DNA of 63,855 nucleotides, filler included, from Hyphochytrium catenoides (lineage: Eukaryota > Protista > Hyphochytriomycota): the NCBI GenBank assembly GCA_900088475.1. It is 8 parts of 8 records of this genome, joined end to end, with 100 filler letters (N's around TTAATTAATTAA, not from the genome) between each part and the next. Parts side by side here need not be neighbours in the genome. Positions count along the whole stretch, not along the records: positions 7,436 to 30,147 come from FLMG01001886.1; 7 more parts are not named here. The stretch is one strand, 5' to 3'. This document shows, one piece after another, positions 8,861 to 28,349 of the stretch (position 1 is its first letter; each line of letters begins with the position of its first letter). The notes beneath the pieces were generated by a model. That model saw only the letters and a list, made by a program, of their open reading frames with translations, did not search any database and had not been told where the DNA came from. Position numbers and translations under genes: made by a program.

Positions 8861-11800
8861 CTACGACTCGTAGACAACCATGCTTCCCGCCGCCCTCCTG
8901 CGAGGAAAGAGAGTCTCTTTATAATATCCCATCGCCAGCAGCCAACTCCAAGTCACCACGGCCCACCAGAGGCTGCATAGAGATGAAACTACAGCCCACA
9001 TCGCTTCCACCACCGGAACTACGAGGTACTCTGTCAATACCGCTGATACCTCGGAGAGAGAGTGACGGAACCTCGAGGAAGGAACGAGCGTGAAGAGAGA
9101 GCGGTGCCATGAATAATAGAGGTAGGGGAGAGAATCCGCGAGTAGAAGGCCCCCTAGTGTAGGATAGAAGGCTGCAAAGTTGGAGGAGACGACGCCGTCT
9201 ACGATCTGCACAGACGAGAGAGGGGAGAGAGAGAGAGAGAGAGAGAGAGANNNNNNNNNNNNNNNNNNNNNNGAGAGAGAGAGAGAGAGCGAGAGTAAGA
9301 GCGAGAGCGAGAGAGGGAGAGAGAAGGGGGGGAGGGGTGCGAGAGAGAGAGCTCTTAGTTAAAATTATATCAAAATAAGAGACGCCAAAGGAGAAGACAG
9401 ATGAGAGTATGACAGGCAGACAGTGGGACGGAGAGAGACACAGGTAAACCGAACGAGGTAAAGATACAGGGAGACAGAGAAGCGAGAGAAATAGGCCGAG
9501 ACAGAGCATGGAAAGCGAAGGGAATAGCCCGTACCAAGTTCCCGTCCATGGTATATAGGTTCACAAGCGGGACTGTCTCTTTCTCTGCGATCACACTCCT
9601 GACCTTGGCTCTAACAGTGCTTTGGTGCTGAAAAACAATTAAGAGTCAATTCACAGATCTAGTTATCTCCCCAGGAAGTCCACCTCATCCCATTTATCCC
9701 TTCTCTCTCTCATTTGCCTAACTGAGCACATGTTACCTGAGAAGAGAAAAAGAGTACAGAGTCTCCGATTTTCAGCTCTTTGGCAGCAACAGCAACCGCA
9801 TCTTCCTTTCCTTTCCATGGATGAGCGCCAGCAGAGCGAACAAGAGACCGATAGAGTAGATGCTGAGGTGTGACCCGTAGAATAGATACGTCCCGGCAGC
9901 TTCTGGTCTCTCCTAGCGACAAAGGACAAGCCTCTGCAACCTCCAATTCAAGTCTGGATAGAGACAAGAAAACGCGAGCACAAGAGGAAGACAGGAAGAG
10001 AGAGAGTGAGGGCCCGAGGCGAAAGGAAGGAAGAGGGAACAAGGGCAGCCAACAAAGCGGAAGAAAAGGTAGAAGTGAATCGCTCCTATGGTCTTTACCG
10101 AAGAAGAGTCTTAACACTTCGGCTGCTATTGTGCACTTGCTTATGATAGACCTGCGTCCAACTCACTTGACCTGTTATCAACGACCATCGAACGGCGAGG
10201 AGAGACCAAAGAAGAGAGAGAATACACAGGGAGGAAGAGTAGCCCGGAATAGGGTAAGTGAACAAAGAATGGCGCAGGGAAGAACAAGCGTTAGGAGTTA
10301 GAATAGCTGATCAGCTGTATCAGTAAGAGGTAGAGCCAAGACAAGCTCAACTTTAGGCCAGGCGGGTGAGACAAGAGAGAGAGAGAGAGAGTCCAAGACA
10401 AGTTTGAGTAACTAAAACTCCATACAAACGGGGAGGAATGCAGGCAAAGAGAGACCAAGTGAGAATGATGGGAGCCTATCTACCGCGAGAGGGAGGAGAG
10501 AGAGACAAACAGAGAGAGTGGGGGGAACTGGAGCGATTTCCTACCGGAGGCGGAGGACGAGAGGATATACTCGCCCACTGCAACATCTACTATCTTCTTT
10601 CTTTCGCCGCCCAGTGCTATTACATGGGAGTCATGCGCAAAGCATTCGGCTAATAAGAGGCACGGGTTAGATGCAGTGCCTTTTGGACTACATCCTACGA
10701 AAGGATAGGCTATAAAGAGTGCAACCTGAACTAATAAAGGTCTTTGTCTTTTCATCTCCTTCTCTCTTTCTTGTTCCTCCCTCTCTCACTGTTTCTCTCT
10801 CGCTCTTTCTCTCTTGATCAACAAGGAGCCCCAAGCTTCATTACCATTTTGGTACTGGCTGGAGAGGGTCTGATTCCTATTCTGACAGTAGGTTCCGTAA
10901 TAGAAGGGTTGGCAGTTGCAACCAGTCCCTAGTGTGTCACACTCTCCATTCCCTGAGCACTCGGTACCGTTCACCATACAGAGACCTGGCCAAGAGGGGA
11001 AGGACGAAGAGAAGCAAGATAAGAGAAGTGATCTTCTTTGGCATATGGCTTCGAAGAGTCAACCAAGAATAAGACGGCAAGAAACTCAAAGAGTTGTGAA
11101 GAGTTCACGTCGGACATGATCCGAGTGTCAGTCCTTAGAGGGAATGAGAAGAAGAGATGCGAGAGAGAGACAGGGAGGGAGCCTTACTTGTCTTTTTGTA
11201 CTCAAAGACCCTTGAGCTTCGCAGTCCTCCTGCGGACGTTCCTCCGACAACGATCAGGGAGGGAAGAGACGTCAGGTTCGACGCATAGTAACGCGTTGTT
11301 GAGGGGCACTCTCCACAACCGTCACGGGGATAGAGATCGATGTACTTGCCTATGACACACGTGAGACGGAACAAGCCAGTGAGGACGCAGGTAAGGACAG
11401 AGACGAAAGAGACACGACGCCTATCTTAACCACTGGGTGCGTACTCTGAAACAATCTAAGGAGGATAGAGACAATGTGGAAGCGGCAAGTATTAAAGCGG
11501 AAGTGCTGAAAAGATGAGGACGAGGTCGTAAAGAAGATAGCGTCCGGCCTTGACGAAGTGAAAGAGGCTGTCTCTTACTGAGTTCTTCTGGAGGAGAGAC
11601 GGTAGATTTGTCTTTCATATGAACCAGCCTGCCACTCACCTCCCCTGAACAATGAGGTTGGACATATTTTAGCACGGTAAGTGTAGGGCCAGGACCCCGA
11701 GAAAAGGCAGCAAGACATACTCCGGCCTTTGCCAGTCCAACTTTCTCGCGCTTTCACTTCCCCTCTCTCTCCTTCCTCCCTCTCTCTCCTTCCTCCCTGT

Positions 11801-14531
11801 CTCTCTTTCGTTCTCTTGCTTTTCTCTATCTATCTCCTTCAGCTTTATCTCTTTTTCTCTCTCTCTCTCGCCCGCGCTCTTTCTCCCTCTTCTCCGTTCT
11901 CGATCTCTCTTTCTCATTGGCCGTCTCGGTAACTTCCAATCTAAGTCTGTCTCGCTCTCTCTCCCTCTCGCTTTCGTCTCCCCTGCGGGTGCCATTTTAA
12001 TGTCAAAAGTCCTCCCCCTCTGCTCGAGTTCGCTTGCCAAGGTTACTTACTTGGTCCGCCGTAGCACCCCGGAGCGCAGACGTAAGGTGTAAAATTGATG
12101 GGTTTCTGGATGACAAGCGCCTTCATCCCATACTTTCCAAGACATTTCTGCGCAGCTGACGGGGCGTTCTCTGCCATACACCAGTCAGGCTTATGTGTAT
12201 CTGTATCAAGGCGCGTCCAGTCGACTGAGAATGTGGAAGTGCGACAGAGGCGGAAAGACAAAGAGGGATAGCGTAAGAGAAAAGGTCAGTTATGGTCAGC
12301 GAGAGACAAAATTTTCTAAGCAGTTACCTCCATTTGTACTGGTCCAGACGTCGGCATAGCCAAGGATATGGTTAAATCCAGCCTCTGTACAGAAAAAGAA
12401 TGAGAGCAATCAGCTACTCTTGTCTCCTACTCTATCCCTTGCGGTCCTCTACTTCAGCTCTCTCATTCTCCCAGCATCATTCTTCTTGTTATCCGTCTCT
12501 TTCTTGTTCTACCTCCTCCAGCGGACAACTTCCGCCATTTGTAGAGACTTACGCTTTCTAGCTCCGCCCATGAGCCACATCCTGGGTTCTTGAGCATCAT
12601 ACACCGTCAAAGTGTCCCATACAACCAGTGAACCCCACGCGCGCGGAAACCATTCCGCAGTCTTCCTCAACCTGAACCATTTATCTGGATGGAACCAATG
12701 CAGCAAGCAGCTCATGAGTATCAACGGCCACCACGGAGACAAGAAGGAGGATTAGACCTCTAGGAGAAGAGGTGTCATCCTCCAGCCTTTTTCCAGCCAA
12801 CGTTGCCTCCCCATCAACAATTTCCTGGTGTCCTCTGTAGCTACTACTGACCTAACTCACATACGGCGACCTGCTTTCTACATCCTCCTTTTTCTCTCTA
12901 GTATCCAAATTATCTGGCAGACGAACTGAGGGTCTCGCCCTATCCCTTCGGAGCTCAAGATCTGGCCTTACCGTCGGTCGAACGCAAGAACCAAACGTCG
13001 CTCACAGTCATTCCCTGGTCGTCTCCCTTACTCTTCCAGTTAGTGGTGTAGCCGCCCATCACAAAAAGCCTCTCCCAGCTCCGTCCATCTTTGTTCACGG
13101 TCTGGGAGGTGCAGAGAGCGCCAGCCCGCGGTGACCAAAGAGCGTCAGGATGTCTCCTCCAGACTATAGTAAGAGCAAGCATGAGCGACAGAGGAGTAAG
13201 ATACATTGTTAGCAGGCAAGAGGTGCGGTGTAGGAGCCGGGCAAAGAGAAGAGCAGAGAGAGAGGACCAGCGGTGGACGAAACCATAAGCATTCTCACCT
13301 TTGAGGTCTTTGGTCGACCACACATCCTTCAGAGAAGGAGAACCTCCAAGCACGTAAAGCTCTCCTTTAAATACCACTGCGCAGTGCCAAGCGCGAGGCG
13401 GAAAGGGCGCCAGCGGAGCTTGGGTCCACAAAGCTGAATAGGAAAGAAAGACATGTGAGGCTCGAGCGTGCGGCGTCAGATTGACTTCACGAGGTAATGG
13501 GCAAGAGTAGTTGGCCGTTAGACAAAAACGAACAAAGCGCAGCAGTCAGAGGAACCGGGATTGCCTTCTAAACCAAGGTGAGGGAGACTAAGAACATGAA
13601 GCTAGGTGGGCCGAAACGTATCCACTTGGAGCCGTGAGAGCATGACAAGCTTGTGAACAAAATAGAGCACAAAGTTGTACGAGTGTGAAAGTGGAGAGGG
13701 GTGAGAGAGAGAAAAAGGAGAGAGGAAACAGTGAGAGAGAGAGAATGGGAGCACAATGGAAGAGCAAGAGACTGAGACAGCGAGAGAAAGGGAGAGAGAG
13801 TGGGGACAGAGAAAGAGAACCAAAGCGGGTGAAGGAGAGAGAAAAAGACAAACGTGATGAGAAACGAATGACCGTTTACCTCCATTAGAAGAGATCCAGA
13901 CTTCGTTAGAAGCATCTGGTGTGAAGCCTCCTATCAGGACCATGTAACCCTCATCAGGCACCTTCTGGAGCCGATCGTCGTTGATTTCAAGAGGACTGTT
14001 GATTTTAGGCTTGAACACAGTGAGACTGTGACCCGACCGCGGGCCCCAGGCACTCGAACTGTTCACTAGCTGCCAGTCCGCACCATCGACAGACTTCCAG
14101 ATGTCGTTGCTGAAGAGGTAAAGTGTGGGAAGACAAATTGAGAGAGAAAAGAAAGGTTGCAGTGGCTGCAAAGGAGAGTCGAAGACCACAAGGACCGCAA
14201 GGAATGGAGTGAAAGGAGACAAGACGGACAAACACGAGAGAGAAAGGACAGGCACGCGCAGAACAAGACGGCCGTGGCACGTAGAAGAGCAAACTAAAGA
14301 AATGGAAAAAGTCTGTTCCCCGGTCAGCTGCCCAACGGCACGCCCGCGTCAACTCACATGCGATTCCGGGGGATCAGGAACATATCCTGATATTCGTCCG
14401 TGCGTCCGCCTGCAATCCAAGCTGCGCCTTGATAATACACAGCCCCAAAGTCTAAGATAGCAGGCGACAGTTACGATGAAAGAACGCAGGGCTTCCGTTA
14501 GCAGAAGACTTCCATTGATGGAAACCGACAG

Positions 14532-14584
<53 letters not shown>

Positions 14585-15325
14585 CAAAAAAGAAAAGAAG
14601 TAACCGTGCAAAGTCACAAGTAAGAAGCTAGGTGTCTGTGCGACCACTGATAACGGGTGATGTATGGTACGTGGAAGATAGCGAGACGCGAGAAAAGAAA
14701 GATAGGTAAAGAAGAGAGAAATAGAAAGAGCAAACGAAAACGACAAGAGGATAAGAGAGAGATACAGGATATGATAGAGAGAGAGACAGACAGAGAGATA
14801 TGAGAGAGAGAGACACAGAGACAGAGTTGAAGAAAGGACAGAGCGAGAGGAAAGAGCAAGAGAAAAAGAGCGAGAGGAAAAGAGAGAGATGATAGAGGAC
14901 AATAACTCTAAAGCCCTCACCATCTCTGGCCGAGTACTTGGGTTGGGCAGATGGGTCTGTCAGGTCTGACCACGTGTCATCAAACTCCCACGCCGTTTTC
15001 TCTCCACCATAGCGATAGGAGCCCAGACACACGGTTTGAGCGGCAAACAGAAAGCCTGGACCAGGATACACAAAGAAAGACAAGGAACCATGCGGGAGAG
15101 AGACAAGGAGAGAGAGAAAGGGTGCGTTAGAAAGCCAACCAGACCACATGTAGGACGAGCAGAAAGCTTTCTGAGGACCGAGGAGGACAGAGGAGGAAGA
15201 GAAAAGGTATGAGGAAAGCCAGAAAGAAAAACGAAATCCTTCGCTTAGCTCAGTGCGCTCGACTTACGCGGCAGACCCAGCAGCCACACGGCACAGAGAG
15301 ATAGAGAAGACGCTGTTGAGCACAT
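8861..15325 (-). CDS. Secreted/membrane Kelch-repeat + EGF-like + Hint (Hedgehog/Hog-type) + C-terminal hydrophobic anchor protein (multi-exon)
   Basis: Probable ATG at 15325 with hydrophobic leader (MCSTASSLSLCAVWLLGLP|RFLFAAQTVCLG). About five Kelch-type repeats (W.PR..H...GG...DVW.S.DG..W) lie in exons at 15056-12050. EGF exon 10985-10845 (CSGNGECDTLGTGCNCQPFYYGTYC). Hint exons 10649-10545, 10171-10099, 9953-9737, 9627-9535 and 9205-8861 are all GT-AG and phase-compatible. Stop TAG at 8863-8861. Exon path between 11350 and 12050 is ambiguous. Confidence 0.85.
9179..10644 (-). other. Hint autoprocessing domain (about 170 aa after splicing)
   Basis: Spliced: CFAHDSHVIALGGERKKIVDVAVGEYILSSSASGQVSWTQVYHKQVH...LRVTPQHLLY...AVAAKELKIGDSVLF...VNLYTMDGNLIVDGVVSSN. 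Cys1 at 10644-10642, TxxH at 9871-9860, terminal Asn at 9181-9179. Confidence 0.88.
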
Positions 15326-15814: not shown

Positions 15815-16154
15815 AAAGACAGAAGGCAAGAGTCAAATGCAGTGTCTCCAGTGCTGTTGCAGGACTGTTGAGCACAGTTCCTGGGGCGAAGGAAACCACG
15901 AGACAGAGGGGTCAGCCCCAGGTCCTGAGCATGCTCTTACACATAACAGCAGTGAACCAGATTTTCGCAAGGATAGAGACGGGGAAAGTGGTGATTAGAC
16001 CGAGCGAGAGGAGGGAGAGAGAGAGAGTGAACACTGGAAGCTTTTAGCGGATGGCTCTGTTGTGGAGTGAGGTGAAAGGAAACTTCCCACTTCACCTTTG
16101 ACATAGGGAAAGCCGCTCGACACACTGTGGAAACGCGTTTGGTCCTTTGAAAGC

Positions 16155-16194
16155 ACTCTCTCTCTGTGTCTCTCTGTGTCTCTCTCTGTCTCTG

Positions 16195-16236
<42 letters not shown>

Positions 16237-16282
16237 TCTTTCTCCTCTCTCCCTCTCTCTCTCTCTCTTTCTCTCTCTTTCC

Positions 16283-16339
<57 letters not shown>

Positions 16340-16340
16340 T
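16155..16340. repeat. (CT)n microsatellite; similar (GA)n/(CT)n tracts at about 14537-14580, 24060-24210, 30250-30315, 34235-34425, 57960-58025, 63225-63300
   Basis: Directly visible dinucleotide runs. Confidence 0.95.
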
Positions 16341-17657: not shown

Positions 17658-18563
17658 TCAGTGCGCTTGTGCAAGTTGGGGCACTTGCGGGCTTCTCGCG
17701 AAAAGTTTTAAGGGCATCCGCCTTGCTCCGTCGTATGGACCGACCCTACCTGCCTGGACATCGATGGACGTTGATTCCCCACCCACAGGACGACCCGATA
17801 ACCCCAACCGTCTAAGCATTCTACTAATTATACTGCCTCTTCGCGAGGCAGACTTTTCACTTATGGCACTGCTCCTTACTAACGATGAAAAGTTTGAGTC
17901 GCGCAGATCTACTTGGGGGTGTGTCGAGGTTTCCAGAACTGAAGTCTTCGTAGGGGAACCAGTAGAAAGAGAGGGTCGTTGCTGTGTCATCCTGCCTCTT
18001 TCTGGCAGAGATGGACCGCTAGATGTGAGCAAAAACCCGCGTATTCTAGCGTACAACTCCAAAGCAACCACCTCATTACATCCCTGAACGGCTTGAAGAT
18101 AGTAAGGCTCTTTCCAAGCATTTCTTCTCCATGATCGAAGAGCCTCTATCCAGCTGTCCCTAACCTTTCTCGTTGATGCGCTGAAGATAAGTGTCTTCTT
18201 TCCCATGCTTATCTCTGAACCTTCTTCAGTTTTCCTAGCCTTGTGACTAGATGAGAATGAGCCTCCGTGAGAAGAGGCGAAACTGCTGTCTGTCGTCTCG
18301 ACCTCACTTCCTAAGGTCTTCTCTTGCACTCCCAAGCTTAATGGCTCCTTTGTACGCAACCCATTTGGGTGTACCACTATCACCAGTCGATGAGCATCTC
18401 GCTTTGGTCGCATAACCTGCACACTTCGGCCGGTAAAGCACACCTCTTCCTCCAGGTGTCCAGAAGACGGATGGAAGAGAGAGAGCTTGCCATCAGCTAG
18501 CCTTACAAGCACCACCTCTACGATTCTTGGAGCACAATGCTGCAGAAGATAACCCTCAGCCAT
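17658..18563 (-). CDS. PH-like domain protein, 301 aa, single exon
   Basis: N-terminal 'EGYLLQH' strand and 'LIFSASTRKVRDSWIEALRSW' PH C-terminal helix with the conserved Trp, followed by an S/R-rich disordered tail. Confidence 0.7.
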   Translation of the reverse strand: MAEGYLLQHCAPRIVEVVLVRLADGKLSLFHPSSGHLEEEVCFTGRSVQVMRPKRDAHRLVIVVHPNGLRTKEPLSLGVQEKTLGSEVETTDSSFASSHGGSFSSSHKARKTEEGSEISMGKKTLIFSASTRKVRDSWIEALRSWRRNAWKEPYYLQAVQGCNEVVALELYARIRGFLLTSSGPSLPERGRMTQQRPSLSTGSPTKTSVLETSTHPQVDLRDSNFSSLVRSSAISEKSASRRGSIISRMLRRLGLSGRPVGGESTSIDVQAGRVGPYDGARRMPLKLFARSPQVPQLAQAH

Positions 18564-24581: not shown

Positions 24582-27500
24582 ATGAAGCAATATTTCCTTC
24601 TCTCTTTCCTTCTGCTTCTCGGCTCCGTGGCCGCAGAATGCCCCAATGGCTGTAGCGGGCACGGTAGCTGCGGTGCCAGAGACATGTGCACCTGTTATCT
24701 CTCCTTCATGGGAAATGACTGCTCAGAGCTGATGTGTCCTTTCGGTAGAGCTCACGTGGATATCCCTCTGGGAGATCTTAACATGGATGGAGAGCTCACC
24801 ACGGAGGCAACAGTGACCAACCAGATGTATCCTGCAGGCACTGCAGAGCTCTATCCCGACGCAGCGGATGATGAAGGACATTTCTATTCTGAATGCTCGT
24901 CTGCCGGTCTATGTGATAGGACAACCGGACATTGCAACTGCTTCCCCGGCTTTGACGGCAATGCGTGCCATAGAACAACCTGCCCAGGTAACGGGCCTAG
25001 TGGTCCCTGCAGTGGGCACGGTACCTGCCATTCTATCAGAGAAATGGGCCAGTACTTCGCATCATCCAACACCCTCTTTGGCGTTGCAGAGATGCCCTAC
25101 CCTCTAGACTATAACTTGTGGGATGCCAATGCTACGTTCGGCTGTGTATGTGATCCTGGATACTCTGGAGCGGGCTGTGAGGAGCAGCAGTGTCAATATG
25201 GCATCGATCCGATGTACCTCAATGACGGGACACCGACTTTTGACCGCTTCCAGCTCTTCCTTGACAACACAGCCAACCAGACCACGGGCTCCACCGCTGT
25301 GCTTGCAGGCTCATTCAAGCTGCGGGTCTTTGATCTCTGGGGTGACAGCTATCTCACCAACAAAATCGAATTTCAGAACGTCTTCTCTACGCAGTTCACA
25401 GCTGACGAGCTCGCAGCGAAGATCCAGGCTGAACTCATAGCACTTCCTGGCTCTTACTTTGACTCTGTCGAGGTCCTTATTCCAGGCACCTCCGACACTA
25501 GTGTAAAGGATATCCCTAAGTATACAAGTGTAGGAGCAGAGGGCTTCCAGATTGCTATTGTCTACAAAGACATCCCAGGCAGACACCGCCTTCCAGAGCT
25601 TGCTGACATCGTTTACACGGCCAGAAATGACGGATATAACCTTGTAGTTGGCGCTCCTTATGGTCGCGGCGAACTCACTGATTCGTTCACCACCAAAGCA
25701 GCCACGACTTTCGCAGCGGTTCCCATCGCAGCTGACGGCGAGTTCACTTTGAATTCTGCTCTCCCCGCGTCGGATCCTGCAGTCGTCGCTGCAACCAACG
25801 GTGGCGCACAGGATACCACGTCAATTTATCGCTGGCTGAAGAGTGGACCTTCACATTTCCTAGGCCACATCGATTCCTCGAACCCTACAAGCCTCAAACT
25901 AGCTTATGACACCGCGAACAGCGGTATGAAAATTGGAAGTGAGCTCTACACTAGCAATAGCCATCCTTTTGATATCGTACCCAGCGCGGCTTTGGTCAAG
26001 GACTGGGTGGTAGGAGATAATACCTTCACAGTCGCTGGGGACTTCAGAGACAGATTCCGGAAGGGCACCCAGTTCGTCTTCCACAACACGCTGTACACAG
26101 TTACCAAGGATGCTGGTGTCACAGAGACAGGTAGCAGCAGGAAGGAGCCATCGTCTATCGTGACCAACAGGAATACTCAGGATATTCCAATCATTGTACC
26201 ATTAGCAGTGGTTTGTGATGGCATCTCTGCCACTGTTTATCCTCAGACTCCCGTGAAGAATCTGAGGCGACATGACAGGATCGAGATTGAGGATGATCCT
26301 GCCGCTCCTCTGGTCGTCTATGAGGTGTCCTCAGTCTCTGCTAATGGACACATCATCAAGGTCAAGTTGATCAGCACTGATGGTTCGGCAGTCTGCACTT
26401 CATTTGGAGCAGTCGCTCTAAAAGGGGGAGAAGTACTGGGTCCCGTGGCAGGCATTACTGGCTCCTTGAATGGGACAATTACTCTTGCTGAGCCGTATAA
26501 GGCTACGGCTACACCTGGAGACATTATTTTCCTTGATGGAGCAGACCTGGGACCCTTCGGGACATTCTCCCAAGGTATTACTATCAGCACAGTGGAGATC
26601 GAGGAGCTAGAAGAAGGCAACACCTATTTCGTCATCTACGGGAACACTTGCATTGGTACGGCCACGGAAACAGCGACAAAACAGACCTATTGCATGACTG
26701 GAGTTGCAGACGTTAGTGGAGCACTGCTCTTGGAAGGTGATAAGATGCTTTCGGCGGGTGGAGGTCTGGAGTTGACATTGACATCAGCTACACCCAATAC
26801 CTTCTTTACCAACGGGGTCGATCCTGATGCAGTGACCACAGCAGTGCCTACTTATTCAGCGGCCCTGTGCAGGAGTGGTGGCTATAGCGGCAAGATCATC
26901 TGTACCGTCACGCCGGGTGTGGCAGCACCAGAAACTCTGAAGACCAACTACTATGCAGCATACGGTGCCTTTGTTACCGACCAAGTGGATAACTTCTACA
27001 CCCTGACAGGTTATGACTATGCTGGTCCTCAGTACCTTTACATCGCAGGGGCAGTCGATGAGAAGATTACGGATGTCACCGTCAGAAGCGCAGCCTGGAC
27101 TTTCATTGGCAGTCCACCGGGAGCTCTGGCTTTGGACGCTGACTATCAAATTGGACCGACTAATAAGAGAGCTATGCATGGTCCAACAGGAGGAGGAACG
27201 TCCACCTCTGTACTCACCGGTGGTAGTGGCACTGTACTCTCCTCCTTGGATTATATGTACCATTACCGATACACTCACGCCAAGACAGTTGATACGACGA
27301 AGACTTATCTGCTCTACACTCACTTCCAATACTGGCTGGTCTCTCTCTCGACGGTGGTAACAGTGGACATTCCCTTCACAGGAAGCATTCTGAGCGGAGC
27401 AGATCCATCGATTCATCTCAAGCCTATAACGGACGACACTGCTTTAATCCGGCACGATGGTACTCACACCATGCTTAACTTCCGAACGGCCAGAGGGGCC

Positions 27501-28349
27501 GCCTCTAAAAGTGAACCATTTGTCATCTACATGGTAGAGCCCAAGCAGAGCAGCACTGTGGCTTATAAAGCTGTGGCCGGAGTCACTGCTGCTTACGCTG
27601 GCAAGAACACTTTCACCTTGTCTACCGACACAGGCGAAATTGCCGTAGGAGATGTTCTCTACTTTCAAGGACAGCATTTCCATGTTGTCAAGGTTGCTGC
27701 CGGAGTTATTACTACTGCAGAGACCATTGACGGTATGGTCGATCCAACGCTTACTAGCCATTTGACCCGCTTCCCAGCCGCTCCTCCTCTTGCCCCTATC
27801 TTCCGCGTGAAGGGAGAGAGAGTACCAATCTCCGTTGGTACAAATATCAGGAGCTGCGAAGTCGTAGAGGCGATCGTGGGAACTAGCCTTGTAAAGGTCC
27901 AAGATTGTAAGGAGGGGGCTTCTGCTCTGACAGTGAAGGCAGGCTTCTCTTTCATTCTCTTCCGCACGCGCTACCGGGTTGTGAGTGTTGCTACTCCAGG
28001 CGCACCTGGCACTTTTGAAGTCACTGTGGACAAGCCCTTCTATGGCATTCCTCTCTATGGCAAGCCTGACGATCTTGCTAAACTCAATCATTACACGGAG
28101 GGAGCCGATGCTCTACATCCCTTGACGATGTATAGCCAAGATATCACATCCACGACATCGATAGGCGCAGATAAGGTCAGAATGTACTTTTATGACGAGG
28201 AAAAGAACTCCCTGCCCAAGGAAACTGTGTACACCTTTGCGGCAGAGTGCTCTAACAGAGGCATCTGTGACCATGCTACTGGGCAGTGCGACTGCTTCCA
28301 GGGCTACACAGGAGGTGTCTGCGCTACTCAGAACACTCTGGGCAGATAA
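24582..28349 (+). CDS. Tubular mastigoneme (flagellar hair) protein, Ocm/Sig/Mas family, 1255 aa, intronless
   Basis: Signal peptide, then AECPNGCSGHGSCGARDMCTCY...CPFGRAHVDIPLGDLNMDG, EGHFYSECSSAGLCDRTTGHCNCFPGFDG and LWDANATFGCVCDPGYSG...GIDPMY. C-terminal ECSNRGICDHATGQCDCFQGYTGGVCATQNTL. This is the family layout. Confidence 0.9.
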   Translation: MKQYFLLSFLLLLGSVAAECPNGCSGHGSCGARDMCTCYLSFMGNDCSELMCPFGRAHVDIPLGDLNMDGELTTEATVTNQMYPAGTAELYPDAADDEGHFYSECSSAGLCDRTTGHCNCFPGFDGNACHRTTCPGNGPSGPCSGHGTCHSIREMGQYFASSNTLFGVAEMPYPLDYNLWDANATFGCVCDPGYSGAGCEEQQCQYGIDPMYLNDGTPTFDRFQLFLDNTANQTTGSTAVLAGSFKLRVFDLWGDSYLTNKIEFQNVFSTQFTADELAAKIQAELIALPGSYFDSVEVLIPGTSDTSVKDIPKYTSVGAEGFQIAIVYKDIPGRHRLPELADIVYTARNDGYNLVVGAPYGRGELTDSFTTKAATTFAAVPIAADGEFTLNSALPASDPAVVAATNGGAQDTTSIYRWLKSGPSHFLGHIDSSNPTSLKLAYDTANSGMKIGSELYTSNSHPFDIVPSAALVKDWVVGDNTFTVAGDFRDRFRKGTQFVFHNTLYTVTKDAGVTETGSSRKEPSSIVTNRNTQDIPIIVPLAVVCDGISATVYPQTPVKNLRRHDRIEIEDDPAAPLVVYEVSSVSANGHIIKVKLISTDGSAVCTSFGAVALKGGEVLGPVAGITGSLNGTITLAEPYKATATPGDIIFLDGADLGPFGTFSQGITISTVEIEELEEGNTYFVIYGNTCIGTATETATKQTYCMTGVADVSGALLLEGDKMLSAGGGLELTLTSATPNTFFTNGVDPDAVTTAVPTYSAALCRSGGYSGKIICTVTPGVAAPETLKTNYYAAYGAFVTDQVDNFYTLTGYDYAGPQYLYIAGAVDEKITDVTVRSAAWTFIGSPPGALALDADYQIGPTNKRAMHGPTGGGTSTSVLTGGSGTVLSSLDYMYHYRYTHAKTVDTTKTYLLYTHFQYWLVSLSTVVTVDIPFTGSILSGADPSIHLKPITDDTALIRHDGTHTMLNFRTARGAASKSEPFVIYMVEPKQSSTVAYKAVAGVTAAYAGKNTFTLSTDTGEIAVGDVLYFQGQHFHVVKVAAGVITTAETIDGMVDPTLTSHLTRFPAAPPLAPIFRVKGERVPISVGTNIRSCEVVEAIVGTSLVKVQDCKEGASALTVKAGFSFILFRTRYRVVSVATPGAPGTFEVTVDKPFYGIPLYGKPDDLAKLNHYTEGADALHPLTMYSQDITSTTSIGADKVRMYFYDEEKNSLPKETVYTFAAECSNRGICDHATGQCDCFQGYTGGVCATQNTLGR

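Follow-up and report, generated by a model that had tools for sequence, protein, structure and literature searches.

A gene broken up by introns on the minus strand of a stretch of Hyphochytrium catenoides DNA is predicted to encode a membrane-bound precursor with a leader peptide, a Kelch beta-propeller, an EGF module, a Hint domain of the Hedgehog (Hog) type and a C-terminal anchor. The stretch analysed (63,855 nucleotides (nt) from assembly GCA_900088475.1, called 'the window' below) includes positions 7,436-30,147 from record FLMG01001886.1, and the gene spans positions 15325 to 8861. The probability that these parts form one fused, catalytically competent precursor was put at roughly 0.68. 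The precursor would probably cleave itself between Glu505 and Cys506, after which the Kelch-EGF ectodomain would be released or anchored to a lipid. The predicted features, all on the minus strand, are as follows.

15268-15325, minus strand: exon 1, with the ATG and a hydrophobic leader (MCSTASSLSLCAVWLLGLP...); Kyte-Doolittle window values exceed 1.4 across residues 1-31, and the donor reads GTAAGT.
11188-15055, minus strand: exons 2-10, Kelch beta-propeller, residues ~27-456, six to seven blades, from homologue searches and Pfam.
15055-14921, 14451-14358, 14109-13880, 13433-13299 and 13163-12972, minus strand: Kelch exons 2-6.
12684-12553, 12384-12328, 12224-12051 and 11349-11188, minus strand: Kelch exons 7-10.
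10845-10985, minus strand: exon 11, EGF module (residues 457-503; Pfam EGF_2) and a short linker ending ...QYQN.
10650-10844, minus strand: intron 11, between the EGF and Hint exons, with the most doubtful splice of the model.
10545-10649, minus strand: exon 12, start of the Hog/Hint domain with Glu505 (10647-10645), Cys506 (10644-10642) and motif A CFAHDSHVIALGGERKKIVDVAVGEYIL, from Pfam and the motif pattern.
10099-10171, minus strand: exon 13, with His552 (10133-10131), from the alignment with 20 Hog domains.
9737-9953, minus strand: exon 14, with a 16-residue insert (Cys572, Cys582), motif B LRVTPQHLLY (T591, H594) and the AAKELKIGDSV block.
9535-9627, minus strand: exon 15, beta strands as far as ...LYTMDGNL (motif F/J, first half).
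9206-9534, minus strand: intron 15, holding an assembly gap (9251-9272) in a (GA)n microsatellite.
8861-9205, minus strand: exon 16, with the second half of motif F/J (IVDGVVSSNFA; Asn675 at 9181-9179), then a weak ARR/SRR-like stretch (680-726), the anchor (727-761; 9025-8921), a basic tail KETLFPRRRAAGSMVVYES and the stop codon.

Gene model and domain identities

Neither strand of 8861-15325 contains a long open reading frame (ORF); the minus strand carries a series of short open segments, which on translation resemble Kelch blades, one EGF module and fragments of a Hint domain. When exon borders were placed at the GT and AG dinucleotides adjoining each coding block, 16 exons and 15 GT-AG introns resulted in a spliced frame of 2343 nt (780 residues), running from an ATG at 15325-15323 to a stop codon at 8863-8861, which was the only stop in the frame. 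Intron donors were mostly GTAAGT, GTGAGT or GTAAGG and acceptors were pyrimidine-rich YAG sites, with 12 of the 15 introns in phase 1. Codon usage, trained on an independent 1255-codon ORF in the neighbourhood (24582-28346), favoured the model frame over the two other frames in 15 of the 16 exons; the codon score was negative for most introns and near zero for intron 11. Taken at the level of the sequence, 15325-8861 is one intron-rich eukaryotic gene, and the fused Kelch-EGF-Hint model is likely correct. An initial annotation of this DNA had proposed a hidden Kelch-EGF-Hint gene with a membrane segment, and the limits it gave coincide exactly with the ATG and stop codon of the model, with a single open frame between them. 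Its statement that the Hint domain is spread over five exons, the whole domain appearing in no single ORF, was also borne out (10649-10545, 10171-10099, 9953-9737, 9627-9535 and 9205-8861).

A run of N letters (9251-9272), with (GA)n on either side, lies within intron 15 (9534-9206), 46 nt upstream of the exon 16 acceptor, and leaves the coding sequence untouched. From its flanks the gap is a collapsed microsatellite inside an intron, and since it is intronic its true length does not affect the reading frame. The junction of exons 15 and 16 restores the Hog motif DGNL/IVDGVVSS without gaps relative to 20 Hog domains, and this seamless joining makes an additional exon hidden in the gap unlikely. 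Long (GA)n/(TC)n microsatellites are common in introns and intergenic regions here (for example, 9226-9300, 14537-14577 and 15995-16340).

The N-terminal half of the model was readily placed. Residues 1-26 are hydrophobic and leader-like (Kyte-Doolittle) and constitute a predicted leader peptide. A search of 1.84 billion representative sequences with exon 4 alone gave 3191 proteins at E<=0.001 (1046 at E<=1e-10), and all 11 relatives that were checked contained multiple Pfam Kelch repeats. Local phmmer alignment extended the match to these Kelch relatives over model residues ~30-365, and Pfam Kelch matches of single exons were weak (E 7e-4 to 3e-3). Judged from these matches, residues ~27-456 are a Kelch beta-propeller of six to seven blades. 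Four phase-1 introns interrupt successive blades at an equivalent point (SSNG/A, STNG/V, RSTD/D and KDLK/V), a mark of blades duplicated within a genuine eukaryotic gene, and this suggests that the propeller grew through duplication of exons. Exon 11 scored 23.2 bits with Pfam EGF_2 (E 8.6e-5), above the curated cutoff of 22.1 bits, and has six cysteines, at 459, 466, 472, 479, 481 and 490. The EGF exon is also a symmetric 1-1 exon, with phase-1 introns on both sides, as in exon-shuffled modules of animals. On the N-terminal exons tested, Pfam returned Kelch or EGF families or nothing, and no Hedge signalling domain; a bona fide Hedgehog protein was rejected on this ground and on the ground that the checked relatives of exon 4 are Kelch proteins.

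At the other end of the model, a strongly hydrophobic segment (residues 727-761) precedes KETLFPRRRAAG..., a pattern that suggests a membrane anchor and a cytoplasmic tail. The predicted precursor is in consequence a type I membrane protein, and the description of the system as 'secreted' in the initial annotation does not fit the model in that simple form.

Single-exon searches revealed little of the Hint domain, and for genome annotation the gene shows that searches by ORF or by single-exon profile do not see a Hint domain split by introns. Pfam, NCBIfam and PDB searches of the model were run exon by exon. The only Pfam matches of exon 12 (34 residues) were Hint PF01079 (E 0.005-0.012) and Hom_end_hint (E 0.023-0.026), the latter placing Cys506 at profile position 1. 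Exons 13-16 taken singly gave nothing in Pfam save a chance match to a transporter, the five Hint exons had no match in NCBIfam, and phmmer found no PDB match at E<=10 for exons 12, 14 and 16. Motif A of Hog domains, taken from a published alignment, was recast as a degenerate DNA pattern of 80 nt; it matched once in the whole window, at 10565-10644 on the minus strand beginning at the Cys506 codon, and in 0 of 100 shuffles. In metagenome contigs nearly all of the matches listed for this pattern were the N-termini of inteins, bacterial Hint proteins or Hog proteins, and ten Hog-like ORFs from the matched loci were assigned to Pfam PF01079 with E values of 1e-21 to 1e-34.

A local Hog profile was built from 20 metagenome-derived Hog domains, the ten Pfam-checked ones among them, and scored 64.7 bits against model residues 506-780, with 160 of the 181 positions of the hidden Markov model (1-160) aligned on residues 506-721. 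As sequences fished with motif A would make that score circular, a second profile was built without motif A. This profile, lacking the first 27 residues, scored 37.5 bits on residues 533-780, against 11.1 bits for the best of 2000 shuffles, and exons 13-16 therefore hold a Hog signal of their own. In a MAFFT alignment, conserved Hog strands across the 13/14 and 15/16 junctions were restored only on splicing. On these profiles and alignments, the domain from residue 506 to ~679 is a Hint domain of the Hedgehog/Hog type and not of the intein type, in agreement with the Hint fold that had been proposed. The gapless alignment of its first 48 residues to the Hedgehog Hint pattern, also proposed, proved too long, as the gapless stretch relative to real Hog domains is ~32-35 residues. 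The best relatives of the domain were Hog domains and not the inteins fished in the same metagenome scan. An intein was rejected as a candidate, the motif VVSSN-F lacking the penultimate His and the column equivalent to C143 (+1) lacking Cys, Ser or Thr.

The same evidence bears on whether unrelated ORF fragments could mimic a spliced gene, or a misjoin have arisen across the N run. Low-complexity GA/TC repeats do abound in the region, and it contains an assembly gap. Set against this, 16 exons share one frame with canonical splice sites, the motif A pattern was absent from all shuffles, the Hog profiles scored 37.5 to 64.7 bits where the best shuffle reached 11.1, and the gap is intronic with a seamless junction across it relative to homologues; by these measures a chance resemblance or assembly artefact is effectively refuted.

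Catalytic residues and predicted cleavage

Residues of the Hint domain were placed by a MAFFT alignment of the model with the 20 Hog domains. Cys506 fell on the invariant first column and corresponds to Cys1, T591-P-Q-H594 fell on the conserved T..H columns of motif B (TxxH), and AAKELKIGDSV (A..L.IGD) matched the A...vGD block, with G626-D627 on conserved columns. Retention of Cys1 and of the A..L..GD.V block, as described in the initial annotation, was thereby confirmed; TxxH is also present, its position being corrected to T591-H594. His552 occupies a His column shared by no fewer than 70% of the aligned sequences (the 20 Hog domains plus the model), equivalent to the general-base position D46/D303 of Hedgehog. 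The substitution D303H in Drosophila Hh keeps both fold and activity (PMC9163320). Further along the domain, DGNLIVDGVVSSNFA aligned with motif F/J, although the model has lost G.Y.P from motif F, and two inserts interrupt the Hint fold, one of them the 16-residue insert of exon 14, which is specific to the model protein and contains Cys572 and Cys582.

Self-cleavage N-terminal to Cys506 is the most likely function, because the domain is a Hint domain of the Hog type with Cys1, TxxH and the A..L.IGD block in place. The sequence work establishes the gene, its domains and their conserved catalytic residues; the cleavage, its nucleophile and what becomes of the ectodomain are inferred, along the following lines. 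Once in the secretory pathway, the Hint fold would promote an N-to-S acyl shift at Glu505-Cys506, aided by Thr591 and His594, which would turn the peptide bond into a thioester. The thioester could then be attacked by water, or by a hydroxyl compound that His552 activates, be it a membrane sterol or another, and the Kelch-EGF ectodomain would be cut off from a membrane-bound stub made up of Hint domain and anchor. The ectodomain would subsequently be shed, or stay attached to the membrane via a lipid ester on Glu505.

Splice choice at intron 11 and alternative readings

Several observations weigh against a fused and catalytically competent precursor. All 15 junctions, that between EGF and Hint included, were predicted from the DNA, and the weakest link of the gene model is the joining of the EGF exon with the first exon of the Hint domain. 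Two rival in-frame acceptors of similar score, giving exon starts at 10709 and 10694, would insert 15-20 extra residues ahead of ...LLLAE/CF, and an out-of-frame acceptor at 10725, which had the best score, would stop the protein shortly after the EGF module. The acceptor used in the model (exon start 10649) scored on par with the other acceptors of the gene, and its junction is in phase 1, as with most of the introns. At 19 nt upstream of the model acceptor is a branch-like CTAAC motif, a sequence found in introns 2 and 5 as well, and all of the rival AGs precede it. The model places Glu505 immediately before Cys506, and an ectodomain ending in QYQNAE, as initially proposed, depends on which of the three in-frame acceptors is used.

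The frame of the first Hint exon remains open for 135 nt upstream (10650-10785, minus strand), a stretch that includes an ATG at 10755 and a leader-like peptide. This open stretch in intron 11 may be an alternative first exon, or an effect of a composition that is GA-rich and then pyrimidine-rich. The former possibility leads to a reading with two products, in which a secreted Kelch-EGF protein ends in intron 11, by read-through (...QYQNGNEAWGSLLIKRERAREKQ, with a stop at ~10786) or by use of acceptor 10725 and the early stop that follows, and a separate or alternative membrane protein of the 'Hog only' kind starts at the in-frame ATG at 10755 (MKRQRPLLVQVALFIAYPFVGCSPKGTASNPCLLLAE followed by CF...), with what looks like a leader peptide and then a cargo of ~15 residues. 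Consistent with two products, the ORF at 10480-10755 opens with this ATG followed by a basic and then a hydrophobic stretch, the frame is open for 135 nt ahead of Cys506, the codon scores of intron 11 are not clearly negative, the top-scoring acceptor is out of frame, and 'Hog only' genes are known in nematodes (PMC2362128). The read-through stop and the ATG lie only ~30 nt apart, however, too close to accommodate a promoter; a GA-rich segment with a pyrimidine-rich tail would yield a 'basic then hydrophobic' peptide from composition alone; the donor and acceptor of the model are phase-matched, as in 12 of the 15 introns, and the CTAAC motif stands past the rival AGs; and fusion of Kelch and Hint is a natural architecture elsewhere (PMC9812998). 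On balance two separate products appear unlikely, and the fused precursor was retained.

A second set of opposing points concerns catalysis. Asn675 occupies the column of Hedgehog C143 (motif J). In Hedgehog this Cys makes a branched thioester, and processing of Hedgehog in mammalian cells depends on it (PMC12054796). With Asn at this position, the branched-intermediate step of Hedgehog cannot occur. The Hedgehog-type cleavage initially proposed was accordingly narrowed: Cys1, TxxH and the general-base His are kept, and the full Hedgehog mechanism is ruled out by Asn675. The Hint domain could then be catalytically dead, or very slow, and act as a mere stalk between ectodomain and anchor, an explanation that gains from Asn675, from the second insert and the cysteine-containing one of 16 residues, from the loss of G.Y.P in motif F and from the weakness of motifs K and L. 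It is nevertheless quite unlikely, as joint retention of Cys1, TxxH and the general-base His is not expected in the absence of catalytic constraint, and Hogs of mosses and red algae likewise replace the motif J Cys, by Ser, Thr or Asp (PMC2362128).

Sterol use by the predicted precursor is doubtful, because the SRR/ARR motifs K and L expected after the Hint fold are faint or missing: there was only a weak match, ...SLPYLYYSWHRSLF compared with ..AH.LLAPLR..Y, with Arg699 on the conserved Arg, and motif L is unrecognisable. An extended form of the cleaving precursor, in which the anchored Hog domain would esterify the Kelch-EGF part via Glu505 to a membrane sterol, another lipid or a cell-wall acceptor, and the Kelch-Hog fusion would be a relic in the lineage (for example, from the red-algal endosymbiont of ochrophytes), is improbable. 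If true, it would mean covalent lipidation in the style of Hedgehog of a recognition or adhesion propeller outside animals.

Protein and metagenome searches with exons 4, 14 and 16 and with the Hog region of locus L071 (a fetched PF01079 protein, described below) returned no orthologue that would speak for a conserved architecture, which counts among the points against the proposed precursor. The best 150 relatives of exon 4 were multi-repeat Kelch proteins, ranked by their summed repeats; none had a Hint domain like that of the model, and those checked carried accessory domains of bacterial type. Exon 16 had no match in a set of 5.8 billion proteins, and peptides of exon 14 had no relative in metagenome contigs. 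The L071 Hog region, chosen as a query because its length permits candidates of 294-936 residues, retrieved only close relatives of L071, without Kelch repeats, those with a named source being Geminicoccaceae bacteria. No ORF resembling the Kelch-EGF part of the model was present in 121 fetched metagenome loci, and synteny at L001, which contains a homologue of the neighbouring gene, revealed neither a Kelch nor a Hint gene.

Relation to known Hog proteins and neighbouring genes

Hog proteins, in which a leader and one of many different lineage-specific cargos precede the Hog domain, have been described across protists (Buerglin 2008, PMC2362128), and Hogs are known from red algae, mosses, dinoflagellates/alveolates, Cryptosporidium, cryptophytes, haptophytes, cercozoans and jakobids (PMC2362128). 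Hint-domain genes have also been noted in Ectocarpus and a pennate diatom. Although the initial annotation regarded the domain combination as unfamiliar, PMC9812998 describes Kelch-hint fused genes in red algae, with 11 copies in Cyanidioschyzon, annotated as 'hedgehog proteins', and 3 copies in Cyanidiococcus. The combination of Kelch and Hint is thus not new, and the gene adds to the known class of protist Hogs. Features of its own are the EGF spacer, the two inserts, the Asn at position 143 and the division of Hint over five exons.

The model shares with non-metazoan Hogs the order of leader, lineage-specific cargo and Hog domain, motifs A, B and F/J, His in place of Asp at Hint position 46, and replacement of the motif J Cys. 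A hydrophobic C-terminal segment after the Hog domain is found in moss Hogs too, and Glu at position -1 of the cleavage site in Porphyra rPy_Hog. It differs from non-metazoan Hogs in that its cargo is a Kelch propeller with an EGF module, its Hint domain has two inserts and five exons, and its motif J residue is Asn. The resemblance to the Cyanidiales Kelch-plus-Hint proteins (Cho et al. 2023, PMC9812998) lies at the level of architecture and presupposes intron 11 as modelled: an N-terminal, galactose-oxidase-like Kelch part and a C-terminal Hint domain. Their two parts are separated by a long Thr/Pro/Ala-rich linker, compared with an EGF module and ~15 residues here; the family also includes Kelch+trefoil variants, its genes are subtelomeric duplicates, and the passages available do not mention a membrane anchor such as that of the model.

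Compared with the HhC of Hh/Shh, the model likewise has a Hint fold with Cys1 and TxxH, of similar length (~174 residues, 168 in human SHH). Cleavage at the N-terminal side via a thioester, and a membrane-associated C-terminal region, are established in Hh/Shh HhC and have predicted counterparts here. Unlike Hh/Shh, the model protein has no Hedge domain, has His for Asp46, Asn for Cys143 and Glu for Gly at -1, shows weak or absent SRR motifs K and L, and is predicted to have a transmembrane segment where Hh/Shh have an amphipathic helix-loop-helix.

Four of the fetched PF01079 proteins (L002, L064, L061 and L071) have the same order of cargo and Hog domain, to which a hydrophobic anchor and a basic tail may be added at the C-terminus; hydrophobic C-terminal anchors follow the Hog domain in L002 and L071. 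None of the four has an EGF module or any likeness to the model outside Hint, and the cargo of L002 is also a beta-propeller, but WD40-like and not Kelch. Their individual make-up was as follows.

L002:161-2416, plus strand: WD40-like beta-propeller, Hog domain and C-terminal anchor; Asn-rich.
L064:38-2749, minus strand: PhoX alkaline phosphatase and Hog domain.
L061:2-3370, plus strand: PT repeats and Hog domain.
L071:410-2014, plus strand, with P0176-P0250: PF01079 family, some members from Geminicoccaceae, ending in a hydrophobic segment and basic tail; several members annotated 'MYXO-CTERM' or 'desert hedgehog protein'.

As the L071 family includes members from Geminicoccaceae, Hog-type Hint domains occur in bacteria. 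Two further loci contained more than one Hog gene. In L098 (12.2-kb contig JAAUYH010057290.1) three Hog genes each follow a Ser/Thr/Pro/Ala-rich linker that recalls the Thr/Pro/Ala linkers of the Cyanidiales Kelch/trefoil/hint proteins (PMC9812998), and no Kelch was seen upstream; in L083 two Hog genes are preceded by acidic Asp- and Lys-rich stretches.

Two ORFs were noted in the vicinity of the gene. That at 24582-28349 (plus strand) is intron-free and encodes 1255 residues; it has a leader peptide and, at either end, EGF modules of the teneurin type (Pfam EGF_Teneurin 8e-13, EGF_2 2e-11), the ~1000 residues between them matching no family. Its best relatives, from the brown alga Nemacystus decipiens and from Phytophthora, had 34-36% identity over ~30% of the length, in the EGF part only, which fits a stramenopile source of the DNA without proving it. 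The other, at 17658-18563 (minus strand), encodes 301 residues with a weak PH-domain match (E 0.012). Look-up of the exact sequences of these two ORFs found neither on record in the collections searched.

Hog domains are thought to pre-date animal Hedgehog, and in the literature cited here no non-animal Hog protein has a known adduct or function. The H. catenoides gene is a clear test case, with a recognisable ectodomain of Kelch and EGF modules, the full core catalytic set (Cys1, His46 and TxxH), an Asn that occurs naturally at position C143, the importance of which is newly recognised, and a predicted true membrane anchor. Cleavage of the precursor, if it takes place, would reveal which autoprocessing steps of Hedgehog are ancestral, and how protists shed or lipid-anchor surface modules.

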